From contig NC_091285.1 in NCBI RefSeq assembly GCF_032444005.1, forward strand, positions 119,598,001-119,662,000: a stretch of 64,000 bases of DNA, read 5' to 3'. The notes below the pieces were generated by a model. The model searched no databases and was not told the origin of the DNA. It saw only the letters and a program-made list of their open reading frames with translations. Numbering within the stretch: the first letter of the stretch is position 1; every line of letters starts with the position of its first letter. Both the position numbers and the translations under genes were made by a program. Origin of the DNA: Ranitomeya imitator (taxonomy: Eukaryota). Shown piece by piece: positions 2,666 through 31,118 of this stretch.

Positions 2666-2766
2666 CGGGAGCGTCGCTCTGTGAGGCCCAGACTGCGCCG
2701 GCGCTTGCGCTTGCGCAGTCTATAGAGGCTTCGGACAGAGTGACGCTCCCAGCGTTATATTATAGA

Positions 2767-3226
2767 CTAGAGAGAGTACAAAGGAGGGCAACAAAATTAA
2801 TGAAGGGGATGGGAGAACTACAATACCCAGATAGATTAGCGAAATTAGGATTATTTAGTCTAGAAAAAAGACGACTGAGGGGCGATCTAATAACCATGTA
2901 TAAGTATATAAGGGGACAATACAAATATCTCGCTGAGGATCTGTTTATACCAAGGAAGGTGACGGGCACCAACATAGAAGAGGATTCTTTACTGTTAGGG
3001 CAGTGAGAATCTGGAATTGCTTGCCTGAGGAGGTGGTGATGGCGAACTCAGTCGAAGGGTTCAAGAGAGGCCTGGATGTCTTCCTGGAGCAGAACAATAT
3101 TGTATCATACAATTAGGTTCTGTAGAAGGACGTAGATCTGGGGATTTATTATGATGGAATATAGGCTGAACTGGATGGACAAATGTCTTTTTTCGGCCTT
3201 ACTAACTATGTTGCTATGTTACTATG
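2767..3226 (+). mobile_element. CR1 LINE 3' fragment with a 43-bp internal deletion
   Basis: Encodes [11 protein letters not shown]...LGLFSLEKRRLRGDLITMYKY, has a (TATGTTAC)n-type tail, and is nearly identical to the 3' end of the CR1 at 10131-12689. Confidence 0.95.
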
Positions 3227-3416
3227 AGGGGCTAAGTGAGGGCACAACAGAGATCTTCCTGGAAGAGAGTCATATAGGGCCTAGCTTGCAGCTTGAGCAG
3301 ACCTTTGGTCTGGTTTGTCAACAGAACCATATGGAAGTGGGTGACCTTGTGGTGAGAGGGAGAGGACCGCACAGATAGTAAGACTGCACACTTAATATTT
3401 GAGTATTAGATAGTAA

Positions 3417-8200: not shown

Positions 8201-8636
8201 GCAGCTGTGTCAGTCAATCAGAAAATAGATACCGTAATACTAAGGGGTTGCAGCAGACAAAAATTTGTGTCTCTTGATAAAAACGTCATCTAGATACTAT
8301 ATATAAGCATTGCTGTCGCCAACAGGAGAAATACAGTGCATACCATACAGCACTGACCAGCCTTACCTTTCCACAATTCATCAAAAAGAAAGTATTCCCA
8401 TATTATAAAGCAAGTATAGTTAGACAATGTGAAAATAAGCACGTGTCTTGATTTTTCCACTTGCTCTCATTCAACTGCAATGAGAACTTTGCTTTCAAAA
8501 TATTTTATTGAATTTTAACTTTAACCGGTAAGGATTGGTCAGGAAAGGGAGGAGGGGAAAGGGTGGGGTATGGAGGTAGGGAAAAACAAACCCCCTAACA
8601 ATAGGGGAGACAGGCGTTCATACAATAGAATTGTAT

Positions 8637-8825
8637 AAACATAGTAAGATAACAAGTACTTTGTGCAGTTTCGCTAAAACATAGTGGTTTAGGTTGGAAT
8701 AACGCAATAGGCTATAAAACTGACCTAGGTAAACACAATAAGATAATAAGTACTTTGTGCAGTTTCGCTAAAACATAGTAGTTTAGGATGGAATAACGCA
8801 ATAAGCTATTAAACTAACATATGTA
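8637..8825. repeat. Two-copy ~94-bp tandem duplication in the HAL1-like 3' UTR
   Basis: AAGTACTTTGTGCAGTTTCGCTAAAACATAG occurs at 8654 and 8748. Confidence 0.9.
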
Positions 8826-10130
8826 AAGTTTTATGTAGAATCGTTGAGTAAGCATCTAATACCATAATGATTAACTAGTAGGTAGTAGTATACGAAAGCC
8901 TGTTATGAACTTTTGCTTAATGTATGGTATGTATCAACTCTGAAGCTGTTCAGTAAAAATAGATAGTATGTAAAGGTCTGTCGACGCGAGGTCATCTCCA
9001 GATGACCCTCGGACCGTTGGTGGGTCAATGTCCGGTTCAAATCAGTAAGAATAGTAAGTGGAGAATTAGCAAGTAGCATGAGGACTGTTAGTTGGCTGGG
9101 CTATTTGTAGGCCAAGAAGAGAGATTACATGGGATAAGAAGAGTCTGTTGAGGGTGAGAACGAGCGGTTGTGAGAGCCCGATGAGTGAAGTATGCCGATT
9201 TTTTCCAAAAAGACGATTCCTTCTTCCGGAGTTGCGATGAGAGTTAGTTTTGATGCATATTTGACTCGTATGGTGGAAGTCTGAGACCAATAATAGGGAA
9301 TTCCTGTGCGTAGTAGTTCTCTAGTAACGCAATCAAATGATTTCCTTTTTTGGATCGTGGCTTTAGACAAGTCTTTGAACAGAGTTATTTTGTCATATGG
9401 ACTTGGGAGGGTTTTAAATTCTTTGTCAAGTCTAAAAGGTCATTCCTTACCCACCTAGGGTAAAAGGATACTATAACGTCTCTTGCAACGTCTGGAGGGA
9501 GAGATGGTGGCCTTGGGATTCTGTATGACCTCTCAACCAGATTCGTCACTCTGGAGGTGGGTAACAGCTTGGATATCATGGTGGAGATGTAGTTTTTTAA
9601 TTGGAAGGGTTGGATCGCCTCAGGGATCCCATCTGATTTTTAAGTTGTTCTTTCTTTTAAAGTCCTCATATTTGATTAGGTCTTCCCTAAATAAGAGGAT
9701 GTCGTTTTTTATCCTTTCCAGGGAGTCTGAGTATAGGGACGGGTTATTAGTATCCTTTGGAGGTGGGGTTTTACCGTTTTGGAGTATCCTGTCGGCTGTT
9801 TTTGGAGTGAGTGAAGAAAGGTTGTGGGCTTTAGTAGGAATAGGTTTGGGGGCTTTCACAATGGCTGACAGTGTGTCTGTTAGTAGTTTTTTGATAAAAG
9901 CCTCTGAGGCCGTTGTTTCAAGGTCAGATGTCAAATTGTATTTGATGCCGAAGTCTCCTCCTGTGGTGTTCACCGATGATAAAAAGGCCTCACATATTTT
10001 AACCATAAATCCGACAGATGGAGAATTTTTTGAAGCGGGAATGCTGTCCATTATGAGCAAATTATGGGAGTATATCCTAGACTCCCTTGAAGTATGCCTC
10101 AGATTAGGGTTCTTTGTAGTAGAGTGTTGT

Positions 10131-12689
10131 AACATAGTAACATAGTAACATAGTTAGTAAGGCCGAAAAAAGACATTTGTCCATCCAGTTCAGCCTATAT
10201 TCCATCATAATAAATCCCCAGATCTACGTCCTTCTACAGAACCTAATTGTATGATACAATATTGTTCTGCTCCAGGAAGACATCCAGGCCTCTCTTGAAC
10301 CCCTCGACTGAGTTCGCCATCACCACCTCCTCAGGCAAGCAATTCCAGATTCTCACTGCCCTAACAGTAAAGAATCCTCTTCTATGTTGGTGGAAAAACC
10401 TTCTCTCCTCCAGACGCAAAGAATGCCCCCTTGTGCCCGTCACCTTCCTTGGTATAAACAGATCCTCAGCGAGATATTTGTATTGTCCCCTTATATACTT
10501 ATACATGGTTATTAGATCGCCCCTCAGTCGTCTTTTTTCTAGACTAAATAATCCTAATTTCGCTAATCTATCTGGGTATTGTAGTTCTCCCATCCCCTTT
10601 ATTAATTTTGTTGCCCTCCTTTGTACTCTCTCTAGTTCCATTATATCCTTCCTGAGCACCGGTGCCCAAAACTGGACACAGTACTCAATGTGCGGTCTAA
10701 CTAGGGATTTGTACAGAGGCAGTATAATGCTCTCATCATGTGTATCCAGACCTCTTTTAATGCACCCCATGATCCTGTTTGCCTTGGCAGCTGCTGCCTG
10801 GCACTGGCTGCTCCAGGTAAGTTTATCATTAACTAGGATCCCCAAGTTCTTCTCCCTGTCAGATTTACCCAGTGGTTTCCCATTCAGTGTGTAATGGTGA
10901 CATTGATTCCTTCTTCCCATGTGTATAACCTTACATTTATCATTGTTAAACCTCATCTGCCACCTTTCAGCCCAAGTTTCCAACTTATCCAGATCCATCT
11001 GTAGCAGAATACTATCTTCTCTTGTATTAACTGCTTTACATAGTTTTGTATCATCTGCAAATATCGATATTTTACTGTGTAAACCTTCTAAAAGATCATT
11101 AATGAATATGTTGAAGAGAACAGGTCCCAATACTGACCCCTGCGGTACCCCACTGGTCACAGCGACCCAGTTAGAGACTATACCATTTATAACCACCCTC
11201 TGCTTTCTATCACTAAGCCAGTTACTAACCCATTTACACACAATTTCCCCCAGACCAAGCATTCTCATTTTGTGTACCAACCTCTTGTGCGGCACGGTAT
11301 CAAACGCTTTGGAAAAATCGAGATATACCACGTCCAATGACTCACCGTTGTCCAGCCTATAGCTTACCTCTTCATAAAAACTGATTAGATTGGTTTGACA
11401 GGAGCGATTTCTCATAAACCCATGCTGATATGGAGTTAAACAGTTATTCTCATTGAGATAATCCAGAATAACATCCCTCAGAAACCCTTCAAATATTTTA
11501 CCAACAATAGAGGTTAGACTTACTGGCCTATAATTTCCAGGTTCACTTTTAGAGCCCTTTTTGAATATTGGCACCACATTTGCTATGTGCCAATCCTGCG
11601 GAACAGACCCTGTCGCTATAGAGTCCCTAAAAATAAGAAATAATGGTTTATCTATTACATTACTTAGTTCTCTTAGTACTCGTGGGTGTATGCCATCCGG
11701 ACCCGGAGATTTATCTATTTTAATCTTATTTAGCCGGTTTCGCACCTCTTCTTGGGTTAGATTGGTGACCCTTAATATAGGGTTTTCATTGTTTCTTGGG
11801 ATTTCACCTAGCATTTCATTTTCCACCGTGAATACCGTGGAGAAGAAGGTGTTTAATATGTTAGCTTTTTCCTCGTCATCTACAACCATTCTTTCCTCAC
11901 TATTTTTTAAGGGGCCTACATTTTCAGTTTTTATTCTTTTACTATTGATATAGTTGAAGAACAGTTTGGGATTAGTTTTACTCTCCTTAGCAATGTGCTT
12001 CTCTGTTTCCTTTTTGGCAGCTTTAATTAGTTTTTTAGATAAAGTATTTTTCTCCCTATAGTTTTTTAGAGCTTCAATGGTGCCATCCTGCTTTAGTAGT
12101 GCAAATGCTTTCTTTTTACTGTTAATTGCCTGTCTTACTTCTTTGTTTAGCCACATTGGGTTTTTCCTATTTCTAGTCCTTTTATTCCCACAAGGTATAA
12201 ACCGCTTACACTGCCTATTTAGGATGTTCTTAAACATTTCCCATTTATTATCTGTATTCTTATTTCTGAGGATATTGTCCCAGTCTACCAGATTAAGGGC
12301 ATCTCTAAGCTGGTCAAACTTTGCCTTCCTAAAGTTCAGTGTTTTTGTGACTCCCTGACAAGTCCCCCTAGTGAAAGACAGGTGAAACTGTACAATATTG
12401 TGGTCGCTATTTCCTAGATGCCCGACCACCTGCAGATTTGTTATTCTGTCAGGTCTATTAGATAGTATTAGGTCTAAAAGTGCTGCTCCTCTGGTTGGAT
12501 TCTGCACCAATTGTGAAAGATAATTTTTCTTGGTTATTAGCAGAAACCTGTTGCCTTTATGGGTTTCACAGGTTTCTGTTTCCCAGTTAATATCCGGGTA
12601 GTTAAAGTCCCCCATAACCAGGACCTCATTATGGGTTGCAGCTTCATCTATCTGCTTTAGAAGTAGACTTTCCATGGTTTCTGTTATTT
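10131..12689 (-). mobile_element. 5'-truncated CR1 LINE with stop-free ORF2 remainder (C-terminal half of APE endonuclease, complete RT, C-terminus) and intact 3' tail
   Basis: Motifs MGDFNYPDINW, LLDLILSN, LGNSDHN, NYRPVSLTS, YLDFSKAFD, SGVPQGSVLGP, IFADDTKL. (TATGTTAC)n tail and 5-bp TSD GTTGT at 10126-10130 and 12690-12694. Confidence 0.96.
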
Positions 12690-14082
12690 GTTGTGAGAGA
12701 GAACCCTGAAAGTCGGGACTTTGGGGATCGTTAGGGCCCTCTGAGTAAGAGTGTAAAGAGGAGGAACAGGAAAACTCTTCCCTATACAAAAACTCACTCC
12801 CCTCCAGAGAAGAGGACTCTGCCATATCTGAGAGGTCCTCCGAGTAGATACTCCCCATCTCCCCCACAGAGTCAGAAAGGACGTCGAAGTCAGGGTGTGC
12901 GACCTGGCATGAAGTCACTAACTCTAAATGTTCCTCCATATCATTTCCTTCTCCTATAGTAGGGACCGACTCCTTTCCAGAGACCTGAGATGACTTAAAA
13001 TTCAAGTTCCTAAGCAGTTCTGCGAATGATGCCTTCCATTCGTCAAGGTTAAACTCTTTAGGGCCGCAGGAAGAGTCAGGAGGGGAAAAGGTGACGACCT
13101 CCCCTGTTGTAGAGTAAGTGTGAGGTCCTACATAGGGCTCAGTAGGAGATCCTGCGTCTGTCATTAGCTGCATTTCTTTATGATTATAGTTGTAATTGTC
13201 ATCTCCGGAATTTGCTGTATATTGTCTTTTGTCTGGTATGTCCCTGTAGGTCTTGTCCCCCTGTAAGTTCCCTGTGAGTTTCAGGCTCCTATTAGGGGAT
13301 TTAGGGGTGGCACACCTCTTTTGAAGTTTATGGGGCTGCAGTATACCGTCGTGTTGTTGGAGCGGTGTGGAGTTCACTGTATCAGATGTGCACTGTGCAG
13401 CTCTGTCTTCCCCATTAGATCTCCACTGTGTGGGCATGTTGTGAGCCTTTAATTTGTTGGTATGCTGACCATTTGCCGGTGCAGATAGCCTGCCCCGGTC
13501 TCCATAAGACCTCCGGAGTGTGTGGGTGTCCCCATCCCCCTGCAGAGTCCCGTAGCCAGTAGCCGCCGCCATTTTATCTTCCCCCCTGCAATCTCCTGCC
13601 TCCGGGAAGGTTCCACTGCGGGCTCCCGCTTCCTTACCAGTATAAGGGTCACCGGGTCTTCCCTGCTGCTTCAACGTGGTCTCTCTCTCTGGCGCCGATT
13701 CGGTTCCCGTCCACAGCTTCGGCACAAACACCGGAGCGCTGTGCCTCAGCCGCGACGGGGCGGGCGCCATCTTGTTTCCCGCTCCGCATCTGACAAGCTG
13801 AGTTTCCTCTTTGTCCCGGTCTCTGTGCTCAGCGCTGCAGGTATGATCCGGGGCCGTGGCAGCGGTGGGTTTCTTACCGGTCAGGGGCTTTTTATGCGGT
13901 GGTGCTTCCTGCTTCTTCGGCTTGTGCTGGGTGAGGGGAGGGGACCTCTTGGTCTCGGCATACCCGGTCAGCGTCTTTTCCTGTGTCTTTAGGCCTCCGT
14001 TCATTTTAGCTCCTCTCTGGTTCCAGGCTGTATTAATCTTCTTGGGAATACATCCCTTCTTGGCTTGACTGGCTCCTGGCAT
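10243..14082 (-). CDS. Chimeric open frame of 1279 aa: HAL1-like ORF1 N-terminus (464 aa) fused in frame to CR1 partial EN plus RT
   Basis: Uninterrupted ORF in the track (10243-14238). The first ATG inside the element is at 14082 (MPGASQAKK), and the junction is at ..GSLSQ|QITETMESLLLK.. Expression is unknown. Confidence 0.6.
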   Translation of the reverse strand: MPGASQAKKGCIPKKINTAWNQRGAKMNGGLKTQEKTLTGYAETKRSPPLTQHKPKKQEAPPHKKPLTGKKPTAATAPDHTCSAEHRDRDKEETQLVRCGAGNKMAPAPSRLRHSAPVFVPKLWTGTESAPERETTLKQQGRPGDPYTGKEAGARSGTFPEAGDCRGEDKMAAATGYGTLQGDGDTHTLRRSYGDRGRLSAPANGQHTNKLKAHNMPTQWRSNGEDRAAQCTSDTVNSTPLQQHDGILQPHKLQKRCATPKSPNRSLKLTGNLQGDKTYRDIPDKRQYTANSGDDNYNYNHKEMQLMTDAGSPTEPYVGPHTYSTTGEVVTFSPPDSSCGPKEFNLDEWKASFAELLRNLNFKSSQVSGKESVPTIGEGNDMEEHLELVTSCQVAHPDFDVLSDSVGEMGSIYSEDLSDMAESSSLEGSEFLYREEFSCSSSLHSYSEGPNDPQSPDFQGSLSQQITETMESLLLKQIDEAATHNEVLVMGDFNYPDINWETETCETHKGNRFLLITKKNYLSQLVQNPTRGAALLDLILSNRPDRITNLQVVGHLGNSDHNIVQFHLSFTRGTCQGVTKTLNFRKAKFDQLRDALNLVDWDNILRNKNTDNKWEMFKNILNRQCKRFIPCGNKRTRNRKNPMWLNKEVRQAINSKKKAFALLKQDGTIEALKNYREKNTLSKKLIKAAKKETEKHIAKESKTNPKLFFNYINSKRIKTENVGPLKNSEERMVVDDEEKANILNTFFSTVFTVENEMLGEIPRNNENPILRVTNLTQEEVRNRLNKIKIDKSPGPDGIHPRVLRELSNVIDKPLFLIFRDSIATGSVPQDWHIANVVPIFKKGSKSEPGNYRPVSLTSIVGKIFEGFLRDVILDYLNENNCLTPYQHGFMRNRSCQTNLISFYEEVSYRLDNGESLDVVYLDFSKAFDTVPHKRLVHKMRMLGLGEIVCKWVSNWLSDRKQRVVINGIVSNWVAVTSGVPQGSVLGPVLFNIFINDLLEGLHSKISIFADDTKLCKAVNTREDSILLQMDLDKLETWAERWQMRFNNDKCKVIHMGRRNQCHHYTLNGKPLGKSDREKNLGILVNDKLTWSSQCQAAAAKANRIMGCIKRGLDTHDESIILPLYKSLVRPHIEYCVQFWAPVLRKDIMELERVQRRATKLIKGMGELQYPDRLAKLGLFSLEKRRLRGDLITMYKYIRGQYKYLAEDLFIPRKVTGTRGHSLRLEERRFFHQHRRGFFTVRAVRIWNCLPEEVVMANSVEGFKRGLDVFLEQNNIVSYN

Positions 14083-17022
14083 AGTATAAGTGATCCAGGC
14101 AGCCAAAATTCCACTTTTGTACGCTTTTTGTAGGCTTTCTAAGGGAGATTGCCAGGAGCTCCTGTGAGACACGTCTGCTCCCTTCCCTTGGCAAACCACG
14201 CCCCCTTGCAATGAGAACTTTGATCTAACATTATGCACAGCTTATTTGCGCAGCAGTTACATTCCAGGCTGATGAGTTAAATACTGAGATACCAGCCACC
14301 TCTCCATTAATTTCTATTACAGCAGTTGGATGTTGTCTTCTCCCTCCATCTTAGCTCTTCGTCAAGCTGCTGTTATCAGTCTTGCCGAGGAGAAGCCACC
14401 AGAGATTGGCCTATCTGACTAGTCTTCTGTGCGGCTTGGTCCCCGGCAGCTATGCAACTATGTTGCATAGCTTGGTCCCCGGCAGCTATGCAACAGCTAT
14501 GCAACTATAGCTAAACTCACGCAGCCAGGGTCTGATACATACTGACTGTGAATCAGGCCGCAGGTATCATCTGTCACAGTAGCATAAGCTCAGAAGGAAA
14601 AAGCTACTAACCCAGAACTGTCACTCAAGCAAAAGTGTTCACTCCTATAGCAACAAGAGTGTGAAAGAGACAAGAATGCTGGATGCTGCTCAAGACACAA
14701 CTTGAAAATAACCATTTAAGAGATAAACTTTATTACTATACCAATTTAATACATTATTGGGAGAAGCTAGCTAAAGCCCTGACTGGCTGCAAATACCTCA
14801 CAATCACTGGGAGGCCACATGTGCGAATATATAGTCTACAACTATCCTAACAGGATATCATAACATTATTTTTCAAAGCTGGTCATGTTGTGCCACACAT
14901 CTTGAGATGTGTTAGGTCAGGAGAAAAAGGTAAAGAAATGCACCTCTGTATATATGACAGGTTTGCAAAAAGATGCATCAAAGTAAAGTGGAAAAGAAAG
15001 TGTTTGTTGCGGAATATCCATGACTACTCCATTTACCTAAATTGGGGTTTACACAAAACTATACCGATGCTGCAGAAGATCATTTAGATATATGTAAGAT
15101 TTTTTAGCGTGAATAGATCCAAAAGTGTCTTAACAACGCTATTGATAACTGTATACAGTGAATGTAAAGAATTCTTGTATGATTTATTTTGTACTTAATA
15201 TTCATGCCACTAAGCCAATCTAAATGTTCACAATCACAATGTTCCCTTCCTTTTCTACACCCATCTGAGATGTTCAATATTCAGGTAGCCATTAGTCAAT
15301 CTAGGGTGGTAGATCAAAGAACCATAATTTTTTTTCTCTACTCAAATTTTGAAAAATATTATAATTTTTTTTTTTACTACTTTAGCACCCTAGTATTTTT
15401 ACTGCTCCGGTTAAAATTCATGATGAAAGAATGGTCCAGACAGAAGGCCCCTGAGCAAGAACAATGGCTGGGTCCTTCTTTGGGGGTGGTAGTGGACCCC
15501 CTTATATCTTGATCCCCTGTGTGGTCCCCAATGGCATGTCCACCCCTGATCCAGATTTATCATTAGATCTTGGCACTCTCTAGGTTGCTCTAGTTACATA
15601 GATTACTTGGAAACAAAGCAGTGAATATTCTGCAGAGGTTGAGAATGTAATAAAGCTTTGTTTTTTGAGCATTGAGGGAAACGTATAACACTGTTATTAA
15701 TTCCTCTGTTTCAAAAGAATAAGTCTCTGGATGCTACGGAGAGTTTGTTCACCTTGACTTCACATTACATATTTCGACCCTTTAGGAAATCCCAGTTAGC
15801 ATCAATTCTTTTCCTTTTGCCATCATCAATAAAATACAGATGGTTGGACAGCATGGCGACTAAACACTCCAGGGGACTGACATACACAAATTGAAACTGT
15901 TCATGGGAGCTATTCCTGTTTTGCTGCAGCTGATCAGGTCAAGCAGAAAACTGGCAGTCAGAAAAAGAACCGACTTTGGAAAAAATTAAGATTGTCAATA
16001 TTTGGAAAGCTACATCAATAGCAGGTAGCAACATCTGGAGAAAATTATACCAACTGATTCCACACTCGAGAGAAATTAAATAACACTCAACAATGCAAAT
16101 TACAGAAAGAAAAAAAGACATTTTTGTCGAACAGAAAACAACGGCTTGACTGTGATGAAAACAAAAGCCTGTTCCATACTACCTTATGGACTTGTTCGCA
16201 TAGTTCAGTATTGGTATCAAACACTGCGCCAAACTTCTATAATGTGAACATGGTCTTAGGGAGCATTTTAACAGAAAACATATACATCTCTTGCTTTATT
16301 CCATCAGAGATGTGTGGAAGTTCCCTTTGAAAGTGCTGAATTTTCAGTAACAAATATGTACCCAGTGACTAAATGGTTTAAGTGCCTTTATAAGTCCTAT
16401 CAATCTTAAAAACAGCGCTATTCTCAGATCACAAGGCGACCTGCTCACATGTATCTCTGAAATATAAGAAGATTATTTTCACTTGGTCTTACCTTTATTG
16501 AGAAATTGTGATGTGAATAACATAGCCAAGTTTTGGTAAAATGACCTGTCATTGTATTCTTGCTGCCCAAACCTCGGGCAGCATGAATCAGAGCCTGGCT
16601 GGCCGCACTATTGCAGCCATGTGCTTTACTTTACAATGCGGCAGCATTTCAGAGAATACATAATTTGAAAAACCATCTGGCTTCTTCTGACTCCAGTTTA
16701 TTGACATGTATCTTCCTATGTACAGACACGTGAGAGAACTGTTAATCAACTGATGATGGGCGCGGAGAAGCCAGCCGCAGACTGCATTGGAGAGCGAGCC
16801 GGGGCTGTGCAGTCAGGTCAGTCTCTGTAGTACCCTGCCAGCTTGTCAGATTATGCAGCAATTCAGAGTAAAACACCCCAAGCTGCAATCACACACAAAG
16901 ACTATGACTAATGGTGCCCGTACTTTGAGCAGCATGAATCTAATGAGAGGTTCCCTTTAAACATAAAATAACATGCAAAACAAAGCATGTACAGCATTAA
17001 CCCCTTAATGCTATTTGACATA

Positions 17023-20112: not shown

Positions 20113-22660
20113 TGTAGCATCCTGGATAGGACCTGTGCACAGTATATACCGTATGGCAATAAACATACTAGAAATAGGAGGAAACCAATATGGCCAAATA
20201 GAGCTGTAAGGGGCGCAATAAGTGACAAAAAGAAAGCATTTAGAGAATTAAAGGAAGTAGGTAGTGATGAGGCATTAAATAAATACAGAAAATTAAATAA
20301 ATTCTGTAAAAAGCAAATCAAGGCAGCAAAGATTGAGACAGAAAGACTCATTGCCAGAGAGAGTAAAAATAATCCCAAAATATTCTTTAACTACGTACAT
20401 AGTAAGAAACTAAAAAATTATAGTGTTGGCCCCCTTAAAAATAGTCTGGGTGAAATGGTGGATGAGGAAAAAGCCAATATGCTAAATGACTTTTTTTGAT
20501 CAGTATTTACACAAGAAAATCCCATGGCAGACAAAATGATCAGTGGTAACAAAAATTCCACATTAAGGCTATGTGCACATGTCAGGATTTCTGGCAGAAA
20601 TTTTCCTGACAAAAACCTGACATTTCTGCTAGAAATCCGCATGCGTTTTTTTCTCGCGGTTTTGATGCTTTTTTGCGTGTTTTTTATGCGTTTTTGATGC
20701 GTTTTTTCCAAATGCATAGAATAGCGGGGAAAACGCAGAAAATCTGCAAAACTAATGAACATGCTGCTTTTTTTACTGCAATGTGTCCTTTTCGTGGAAA
20801 AAAACGCATCATGTGCACAAAAATTGCAGAATGCATTCTAAATGATAGAATGCATAATGTATGCGTTTTTATTGAGTTTTTATCGCGTTTTTATTATGAA
20901 AAAACGCGGAAAAAAACGTGAAAAAACCTGAACGTGTGCACATACCCTAAATGTCACCTGCTTAACCCAGCAGGAAGTACGGCAGCGTCTAAAAATCACA
21001 CCCTCGAGTACTGCAGGAATTAAGTACAGTCATTGATAGAGCATTATTTTAATCTTCAAAGACTCCATAATAACAGGGTCTGTACCACAGAACTGGCGTA
21101 TAGCAAATGTGGTGCCTATATTCAAAAGGGGACAAACACTGAACTCGGTAATTATAGGCCAGTAAGCTTAACCTCTACTGTGGGTAAAATCCTGGAAGGC
21201 ATTCTAAGGGATGCTATACTGGAGTATCTGAAGAGGAATAACCTCATGACCCAGTATCAGCACGGGTTTACTAGGGACCATTCATGTCAGACTAATCTGA
21301 TCAGCTTCTATGAAGAGGTAAGTTCTGGACTGGACCAAGGGAACCCAGTGGATGTAGTGTATATGGACTTTTCAAAGCTTTTGATACGGTGCCACACAAA
21401 AGGTTGATACATAAAATGAGAATGGGGATAGGGGAAATTATGTGTAAGTGGGTTAAGAGCTGGCTCAGGGATAGGAAATAAAGGGTGGTTATTAATGGAG
21501 CACACTCGGACTGGGTCGTGGTTAGCAGTGGGGTACCACAGAGGTCAGTATTGGGCCCTCTTCTTTTTAACTTATGTATTAATGACCTTGTAGGGGACAT
21601 ACAGAGTAGAATTTCAATATTTGCAGATGACACTAAACTCTGTAGGGTAATCAATACAGAGGAGGACAATTTTATATTACAGGATGATTTATGTAAACTA
21701 GAAGCTTGGGCTGATAAATGGCAAATGAGCTTTAATGGAGATAAATGTAAGGTCATGCATTTGGGTAGAAGTAATAAGATGAATAACTATGTGCTTAATT
21801 CTAAAACTCTGGGCAAAACCGTCAATGAAAAAGACCTGGGTGTATGGGTGGATGACAAACTCATGTTCAGTGGCCAGTGTCAGGCAGCTGCTACAAAGGC
21901 AAATGAAATAATGGGATGCATTAAAAGAGGCATAGATGCACGTGACGAGAACATAATTTTACCTCTATAGAAGTCACTAGTTCGACCACACTTAGAATAC
22001 TGTGCACAGTTCTGGTCTCCGGTGTATAAGAAAGACATAGCTGAACTAGAGCGGGTGCAGAGAAGAGCGACCAAGGTTATTAGAGGACTGGGGGGGTCTG
22101 CAATACCAAGATAGGTTATTACGCTTGGGGCTATTTAGTTTGGAAAAACAAAGACAAAGGGGTGATCTTATTTTAATGTATAAATATATGAGGGGACAGT
22201 ACACAGACCTTTCTGATGATCTTTTTAATCATAGACCTGAGACAGGGACAAGGGGGCATCCTCTACATCTGGAAAAAAGAAGTTTTAAGCATAATAACAG
22301 GCATGGCTTCTTTACTGTAAGAGCATTGAGACTATAGAACTCTCTGCCATATGATGTTGTAATGAGTGATTCATTACTTAAATTTAAGAGGGGATTGGAT
22401 ACCTTTCTGGAAAAGTATAATGTTACAGGGTATATACACTAGATTCCTTGTTAGGGCGTTGATCCAGGGAACTAGTCTGATTGCCATATGTGGAGTCAGG
22501 AAGGAATTTTTTTCCCCAAAGTGGCGCTTACTATTTGCCACATGGGTTTTTTTTGCCTTCCTCTGGATCAACATGTTAGGGTATGTTAGGTTAGGCTATG
22601 GGTTGAACTAGATGGACATAAAGTCTTCCTTCAACCTTAATAACTATGTTACTATGTTAC
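20113..22660 (+). mobile_element. Degenerate 5'-truncated CR1 LINE (second subfamily) with a MITE insertion
   Basis: ORF2 fragments (KNNPKIFFNY, NYRPVSLTS, MDFSK, SGVPQRSVLGP, IFADDTKL) carry stops and frameshifts. Ends in a (TATGTTAC)n tail. Confidence 0.93.
20567..20947. mobile_element. PIF/Harbinger-type MITE inserted in the CR1
   Basis: TIR GG(C/G)TATGTGCACA and TAA TSD. Removing it restores CR1 NSTLNVTCLTQQEVR. Confidence 0.9.
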
Positions 22661-30952: not shown

Positions 30953-31118
30953 NNNNNNNNNNNNNNNNNNNNNNNNNNNNNNNNNNNNNNNNNNNNNNNN
31001 NNNNNNNNNNNNNNNNNNNNNNNNNNNNNNNNNNNNNNNNNNNNNNNNNNNNNNNNNNNNNNNNNNNNNNNNNNNNNNNNNNNNNNNNNNNNNNNNNNNN
31101 NNNNNNNNNNNNNNNNNN
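30953..31118. other. Assembly gap (166 N)
   Basis: Run of N. Confidence 1.

Follow-up and report, generated by a model that had tools for sequence, protein, structure and literature searches.

In-frame nesting of a young CR1 retrotransposon in an ORF1-only L1-type element of Ranitomeya imitator

Related elements and the composite locus

In the account given in PMC5753468, HAL1 (half-L1) elements are mammalian non-autonomous L1 derivatives that encode ORF1 only (Smit, 1999; Bao and Jurka, 2010, cited therein). CR1-mobilised SINEs and chimeric retroposons, for example the SINEs of passerines, arise by gaining a CR1 3' tail (PMC5729268). In the window, by which we mean the whole analysed stretch of 64,000 nucleotides of R. 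imitator DNA, a CR1 element interrupts an ORF1-only L1-type element (the host element) on the same strand and in the same reading frame. The 3' end of CR1 is the part thought to be recognised by reverse transcriptases (RTs) of stringent-type LINEs. The host element resembles HAL1 in encoding an L1-type ORF1p but no RT, and in occurring as full-length copies with target-site duplications (TSDs). It is, however, of independent origin and from a frog; ORF1, at ~790 codons, places a stretch of ~530 residues before the conserved core, a poly(A) tail is lacking, and its TSDs start with CAAAGT. With a core identity of 25-51% to any homologue, descent from the mammalian HAL1 lineages is not seen, and the term 'HAL1-like' should be read as an analogy of architecture, not as membership. 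A foreign 5' module upstream of a CR1 3' end is shared with the CR1-tailed SINEs; those families, in contrast, comprise many copies with their own TSDs, whereas the composite is one locus, in which the CR1 tail is internal and followed by the remainder of the host. In its TSD, its 5' truncation and a 3' end that is intact and carries the family tail, the CR1 matches a 5'-truncated LINE nested in another transposable element; the older element is likewise cut in two, its pieces colinear with a paralogue that is uninterrupted. Unlike the usual case, the CR1 is co-oriented and in frame, leading to an ORF of 1279 codons. The composite is very probably a one-off, ordinary nested insertion.

Anatomy of the two elements

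The anatomy of the composite and the domain content of its parts are as follows (all on the minus strand).

8492..14206, minus: host element, interrupted by the CR1; full-length ORF1-only L1-type non-autonomous element, ~3.15 kb without the CR1
14207..14222, minus: 5' copy of the host TSD (CAAAGTTCTCATTGCA), an exact 16-bp repeat
8476..8491, minus: 3' copy of the host TSD, an exact 16-bp repeat
12691..14082, minus: N-terminal 464 codons of host ORF1, an extension with no recognised domain
9128..10125, minus: orphaned 3' half of host ORF1 with the conserved end of the coiled coil, RRM and CTD; frameshifted
10131..12689, minus: 5'-truncated CR1 insert of 2559 bp, nearly identical in nucleotide sequence to the copies at L002 and L003
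12690..12694, minus: 5' copy of the CR1 TSD ACAAC, an exact 5-bp repeat
10126..10130, minus: 3' copy of the CR1 TSD ACAAC, an exact 5-bp repeat
12391..12681, minus: C-terminal remnant of the APE endonuclease (aa 468-564 of the fused ORF, Pfam Exo_endo_phos_2)
10864..11559, minus: RT domain (aa 842-1073, Pfam RVT_1, E=3.8e-34, FADD present)
10131..10242, minus: CR1 3' UTR ending in the (TATGTTAC)n tail (TRF: TATGTTAC x3.2 at 10129-10154)
10243..14082, minus: fused ORF, 1279 codons from the ATG at 14082, plus stop

The host element is 95% identical at the nucleotide level to L001:9566-13623 of R. imitator, with both the 5' and the 3' ends matching (in L001 they are ~3.15 kb apart after removal of insertions), and as the TSD of L001 is a different one, at least two copies of the host family with distinct TSDs are present. 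No ORF2 or RT of its own was found within the element ends, either by Pfam or by three-frame translation 3' of ORF1, which gave stops only. The 5' end is full-length and may carry a promoter; at the other end the terminal AATAAA is intact, placing the host polyadenylation signal 1.6 kb past the CR1 tail; AATAAA/ATTAAA also occurs at several places within the CR1 insert. The earlier note had described a 5'-truncated CR1 with a 5-bp TSD in the orientation and frame of ORF1, and this was borne out by the ACAAC on both sides and by the empty site of the CR1-free paralogue L001, which is continuous across the insertion point with a single ACAAC and zero bases lost. The 16-bp host TSD encloses the entire composite; next to the CR1 tail come first the TSD of the CR1 itself and then the 3' half of the host.

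Judging from an ORF2 with APE followed by RT, the insert is a non-LTR retrotransposon. The label CR1, as against L2, Rex1 and other clades, is a putative one based on the octamer tail, an established CR1 trait. Its closest described counterpart in the comparison, a 931-aa CR1-type ORF2 from Xenopus tropicalis (UniRef A0A803JG40, a cluster of 178 sequences), aligns over residues 109-924 with 56% identity and without large gaps, covering the C-terminus of APE, the RT and the C-terminal domain; residues 1-108 are absent from the fused ORF and replaced by 464 residues of an L1-type ORF1p N-terminus. In line with this, Pfam Exo_endo_phos aligned at profile positions 131-225 of 225 only, indicating that just the C-terminal part of APE is present. 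From the CR1 thus come the last (C-terminal) ~40% of the endonuclease, the entire RT, and the 3' UTR with its (TATGTTAC)n tail, and the GDFN, SDH and FADD motifs are legible in the translation. A probably dead endonuclease had been proposed earlier from a missing N-terminal half; the Pfam and Xenopus alignments confirm the truncation (~108 N-terminal residues absent), and the remnant is presumably non-functional. Instead of poly(A), the element has a short microsatellite of octamers at its 3' end, a family-wide trait, as a (TATGTTAC) end of 1.5-3 units is common to four other family copies (L001, L002, L003 and window positions 3160-3230). The predicted fold of the CR1 3' UTR was no better than that of shuffled sequences (z -0.96).

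The fused ORF joins the 464 codons of the L1-type ORF1 N-terminus to the 5'-truncated CR1, and the minus-strand frame is without stops across 10243..14238 (1331 codons), remaining open upstream of the ATG to 14238. CR1 homology begins abruptly at aa 465/466 in every match to a CR1 ORF2 protein, which together with Pfam agrees with the proposed order of 464 aa of ORF1, C-terminal APE, complete RT, CR1 3' UTR and tail; likewise, a stop-free 1279-aa ORF behind an intact host 5' end was claimed and is found, open from 14082 in a host whose 5' end is full-length. An exact-product look-up gave no database record of the 1279-aa protein. Among 5.8 billion predicted proteins, none with a length of 110-352 or of 704-2238 aa spans the junction.

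The N-terminal 464 codons contain no stop against 21.9 expected, and none of 20000 dinucleotide shuffles was open, so this frame is not open by chance. Pfam gave no match for the 464 aa, and AF2 modelling led to a mean pLDDT of 40.5 with one helix at 346-362, suggesting an extension that is unfoldable or disordered; it is also weakly constrained. The sole relative found for it is a RARS2 gene model of R. imitator, which wrongly takes a copy of the host element as its first exon; to P0021, the nearest long ORF1p, it has no real similarity at the N-terminus. The ORF1p core, by contrast, lies wholly downstream of the CR1 junction, in the orphaned half. Here, two 1-bp frameshifts at ~9631 and ~9415 are clear, in accordance with the number given before, and a third 1-bp difference is possible at 9205. 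Pfam was negative both for the broken ORF1 pieces of the window and for the intact 254-aa ORF1 C-terminus of the paralogue L001, and a single-sequence PDB search reached LINE-1 ORF1p at E=0.02 only. The link needed a profile: one of 30 homologues, led by the intact ORF at L001:12169-12930, matched human LINE-1 ORF1p (2ykp/2yko) with E=2.9e-24 and the mouse protein (2ldy) with 6e-19, and the homologue P0026 passes Pfam Transposase_22. By these profile matches, the coiled coil, RRM and CTD of the host are homologous to LINE-1 ORF1p.

Relative ages and substitution patterns

The order of events and the relative ages of the two elements are clear, the CR1 being the later and much younger one. The insert is 98.9% identical at the nucleotide level to L002:8169-10726 and 98.8% to L003:6625-9174, a divergence of 1.1-1.2%, and both copies extend at least 1.1 kb further 5' than the insert. 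The family is abundant in gene models of R. imitator (93-99% aa identity) and looks currently active from copies that are ~99% alike; given this abundance and identity, an open CR1 frame is unremarkable. All counts are from observed differences only. The fused part had been called mutation-free earlier, which does not hold: 13 substitutions in the CR1 ORF are private to the window copy, 8 of them non-synonymous and 5 synonymous, and beside the CR1 stop codon 3 bp are deleted in this copy alone. Among the replacements are R832H, N947I and D1079N, at positions conserved with Xenopus. Two private indel events were observed in each of the comparable copies L002 and L003, and an intact copy at such an age is a minority outcome, not a rare one.

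The host differs from its paralogue L001 by 4.4% substitutions in both halves. dN/dS against L001 was 0.63 for the N-terminal part, 0.7-0.9 for wrong frames, and 0.38, 0.07 and 0 for the orphaned C-terminal core. The fused 5' half (1392 nt) is free of frameshifts, against 2-3 in the orphaned half (998 nt), a distribution with a chance probability of ~0.17 to 0.07, and the contrast between intact fusion and broken orphan is not significant. That the fused part is intact and the orphaned half broken is also explained by the CR1 being much younger (pairwise divergence ~1% versus 4.4%). Both the 13 private CR1 changes and the N-terminal dN/dS of 0.63 are small-number figures compatible with neutrality. 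Selection keeping the 5' half open was considered and rejected, as the frameshift distribution is not significant and the N-terminal dN/dS is near that of wrong frames. As an observation in its own right, the frameshift contrast runs in the direction expected from selection on the fusion.

Origin of the fused reading frame

The composite is best explained by three steps. An ORF1-only L1-type element came first and left the 16-bp TSD; later, a CR1 from the very young and abundant family jumped into its ORF1; and this copy, 5'-truncated inside the endonuclease-coding region, produced the 5-bp TSD. Same strand and same frame are a 1-in-6 chance outcome. The long ORF owes its existence to a host 5' half that has so far gained neither a stop nor a frameshift, and to the youth of the CR1, which has left no time for decay. 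Translated, it would give a protein with an ORF1p N-terminal extension that is disordered, half an endonuclease that is non-functional, and an RT; the RNA-binding core of ORF1p would be missing, and the protein is presumably without function. Nothing in the sequence data indicates expression, selection or copying of the composite.

The earlier note had inferred that a non-autonomous element gained an RT together with a 3' recognition end, and took this as a snapshot of how chimeric LINEs could arise. The structure behind this claim stands, but the evolutionary reading found no support in the tests made: the host TSD lies outside, beyond the CR1 tail comes the 3' half of the host, the ORF1p core is lost from the fusion and no junction-crossing protein occurs in the set searched. 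Were the locus to found a new family, chimeric LINE or non-autonomous, RNA from the host promoter would have to end at, or be primed from, the CR1 3' UTR and tail, and be copied to new sites by the fused RT or, in trans, by proteins of active CR1 elements. A full-length host 5' end with an open ORF, a complete RT with a family-typical CR1 3' end, and a seemingly active family agree with this. However, with the host TSD outermost the locus is a birth site and not a retrotransposed copy of a chimera, and the mark of a propagating chimera, a copy ending at the CR1 tail with its own single TSD, is absent at this locus. The truncated endonuclease leaves no complete endonuclease and RT machinery, and the private CR1 changes look neutral. 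Moreover, given the host polyadenylation signal 1.6 kb past the tail and the AATAAA/ATTAAA sites inside the CR1, transcripts would not be expected to stop precisely at the CR1 tail. Such a founder role is therefore very unlikely. The fuller version, with transcription from the host 5' end, translation as an ORF1p-N-terminus/RT fusion and copying via the internal CR1 3' end by active CR1 machinery to found an L1-5'/CR1-3' mosaic family, is a shade less likely again. Expression and copying, if shown, would make the composite a rare case in which the shuffling of modules between two LINE clades, here the 5' module of an L1 and the RT and 3' end of CR1, is seen directly.

Mobilisation of the whole composite by the host's L1 partner via the host 3' end, with the CR1 as cargo, is as improbable as that fuller version: both ends of the host are preserved, as are its TSD and terminal AATAAA, and at least two family copies with different TSDs exist, but no functional ORF1p can be supplied in cis from an ORF1 that is split and frameshifted in its 3' half, and the paralogue L001 is without CR1. 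A repeat mis-assembly joining the CR1 to the host element would be conceivable in a very repeat-rich genome with both partners being multi-copy repeats; the clean 5-bp TSD on both sides, the exact continuity of the host sequence over the site compared to the paralogue, and private CR1 substitutions throughout the insert make it extremely improbable. Least credible, with a probability close to nil, is a host-domesticated fusion gene under selection, for which the long intact ORF might speak, as protein searches found neither an orthologue nor a paralogue of the fused architecture, the substitution pattern looks neutral and the parts are very young.

For a nested insertion, the wider meaning is one of caution: in a genome full of active CR1, such insertions yield long 'fusion' ORFs by chance, and these should not be called new genes or element families without evidence from copy number or expression. 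Nevertheless, the nested pair provides a clean dated marker, placing activity of the CR1 family well after that of the ORF1-only host family.

The fused reading frame and its domains

On the minus strand a frame without stops runs from 14238 to 10243 (1331 codons, 1279 when counted from the first ATG), and the long ORF1-RT fusion described in the earlier note was confirmed with two corrections, one to the mutation-free state of the fused part and one to the frameshift count of the orphaned half. The features concerned are as follows.

14206-8492, minus strand: host element, interrupted by CR1
14207-14222 and 8476-8491: perfect 16-bp duplication around the host element
14082-10243, minus strand: fused ORF of 1279 codons (stop at 10243-10245)
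12689-10131, minus strand: 5'-truncated CR1 insert within host ORF1
12690-12694 and 10126-10130: ACAAC at the two ends of the CR1 insert

Pfam placed RVT_1 at aa 842-1073 of the fused ORF (E=3.8e-34) and Exo_endo_phos_2 at aa 468-564, with Exo_endo_phos matching at profile positions 131-225 of 225 only, and gave no match for the first 464 residues; of the APE endonuclease only the C-terminal part is present. All CR1-type proteins recovered in database searches begin to align at ORF residue 465 or 466, their own sequences extending further upstream. As the alignment to a 931-aa ORF2 of Xenopus tropicalis starts at its residue 109 (residues 109-924, 56% identity), about 108 N-terminal endonuclease residues are absent, and RT and C-terminal domain are complete. 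The proposed order of 464 aa of ORF1 N-terminus, APE C-terminal part and complete RT holds, as does the truncation of the endonuclease. The 3' UTR after the stop, for which no significant fold was predicted, terminates in (TATGTTAC) x3.2, a type of 3' end common to four other copies of this CR1 family.

Two further CR1 pieces lie in the window on the plus strand. The one at 2757-3226 is a 3' fragment that shares 90% identity and the tail with the insert; the other, at 20118-22660, is older and ~70% identical. CR1 activity here spans a long period.

An L1-type, ORF1-only host

In a protein database search, the sole relative of the 464-residue N-terminus was an R. imitator gene model at a locus (L001) containing a CR1-free paralogue of the host element, 95% identical. 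There the insertion site is uninterrupted and holds one ACAAC, compared with two in the window, and no host base was lost, in agreement with the 5-bp TSD reported before. The paralogue has the termini of the window host and a different duplication.

No RT was found in the host outside the CR1 insert, either by Pfam on the fused ORF or by three-frame translation downstream of ORF1. In the window copy, the two frameshifts already noticed, each of 1 bp and located near 9631 and near 9415, disrupt the C-terminal part of host ORF1; its L001 counterpart is an intact ORF of 254 residues with 771 homologues. A profile built from 30 of these matched human LINE-1 ORF1p (2ykp) at E=2.9e-24 across coiled coil, RRM and CTD, and one homologue passed Pfam Transposase_22. 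Together with the missing RT, this identifies the host as an L1-type, ORF1-only element; the earlier label HAL1-like holds for its architecture (as defined in PMC5753468), although its origin is independent of HAL1.

In both host-family copies the TSDs start with CAAAGT (L001 ~9546-9565 / ~13610-13630), and the element ends in ...AATAAAATATTTTGAAAG with no poly(A) tail, an indication that the L1 partner mobilising this ORF1-only family either prefers certain targets or primes by microhomology. Both copies also carry a 94-bp tandem duplication in the 3' UTR (2 copies, 89%; window 8636-8827, L001 13274-13465). The paralogue ORF1 contains an insertion of ~890 bp (L001 11262-12153), ~170 bp downstream of the window's CR1 target site, matchless in the window and the other loci compared. 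A 625-aa RefSeq protein of R. imitator named 'mucin-3A-like' (P0021, XP_069614618.1) has a long low-complexity N-terminus followed by an L1 ORF1p core 51% identical to that of the host family, and looks from its sequence like another long-ORF1 L1-type element. The first exon of the R. imitator mitochondrial arginine-tRNA ligase (RARS2) model (P0001) consists of ~160 codons of a host-family ORF1 copy (L001 10001-10500). This is likely to be either a mistake of annotation or an alternative first exon derived from a TE.

Nested insertion or emerging chimeric LINE

The locus is best explained by an ordinary, recent nested insertion in frame by chance, and we are highly confident of this reading. 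The earlier note had instead proposed a new chimeric LINE in the making, which is unsupported. The locus is where the chimera formed and not a copy of one, since the outer duplication is that of the host and the host 3' half comes after the CR1 tail. No junction-crossing protein was found among database proteins of 704-2238 aa or 110-352 aa, and the exact 1279-aa product has no database record. A transcript started at the putative host promoter would encounter several AATAAA/ATTAAA sites within CR1 and then the host signal at 8509, with nothing to stop it at the CR1 tail. Mobilisation would require internal priming by CR1 proteins in trans, which is conceivable where a CR1 family is active in the genome and is unsupported here.

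The description of the fused part as mutation-free did not hold. The CR1 insert differs by 1.1-1.2% from longer copies at two loci (L002 and L003; 99.1% identical to each other across 3655 bp, both reaching at least 1.1 kb further 5'), and its ORF carries 13 private substitutions (5 synonymous, 8 non-synonymous), several altering residues common to other frog copies and Xenopus, while a private 3-bp deletion adjoins the stop codon. As the frames of L002 and L003 are broken by two private indel events apiece, an open frame at such an age is a minority outcome and not a rare one, with an estimated chance of ~10-20%. Between the two host copies the divergence is 4.4% in either half; in the window, host ORF1 has no frameshift in its 5' half (1392 nt) versus two or three in its 3' half (998 nt), a contrast with a chance probability of ~0.17 to 0.07 by our own arithmetic.

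The retained 464 codons are genuinely coding, with 0 stops against 21.9 expected, 0/20000 shuffles open, and 18 and 32 stops in the remaining two frames. They lack a predicted fold (single-sequence AF2, mean pLDDT 40.5, one helix), and a dN/dS of 0.63 between window host and L001, against 0.7-0.9 in wrong frames, suggests almost neutral evolution between these two copies; ORF1p core segments gave 0.38, 0.07 and 0. This conserved core starts ~70 residues into the L001 C-terminal ORF and lies entirely within the orphaned 3' half. With the ~108 APE residues also absent, the predicted fusion would lack the RNA-binding part of ORF1p, and its endonuclease would be incomplete.

Elsewhere in the window, a run of 166 N at 30953-31118 represents a gap or masked stretch, and a GC-rich 32-bp minisatellite at 145-2203 (64 copies, 96% match) accounts for the extreme AT skew over the initial 2 kb.
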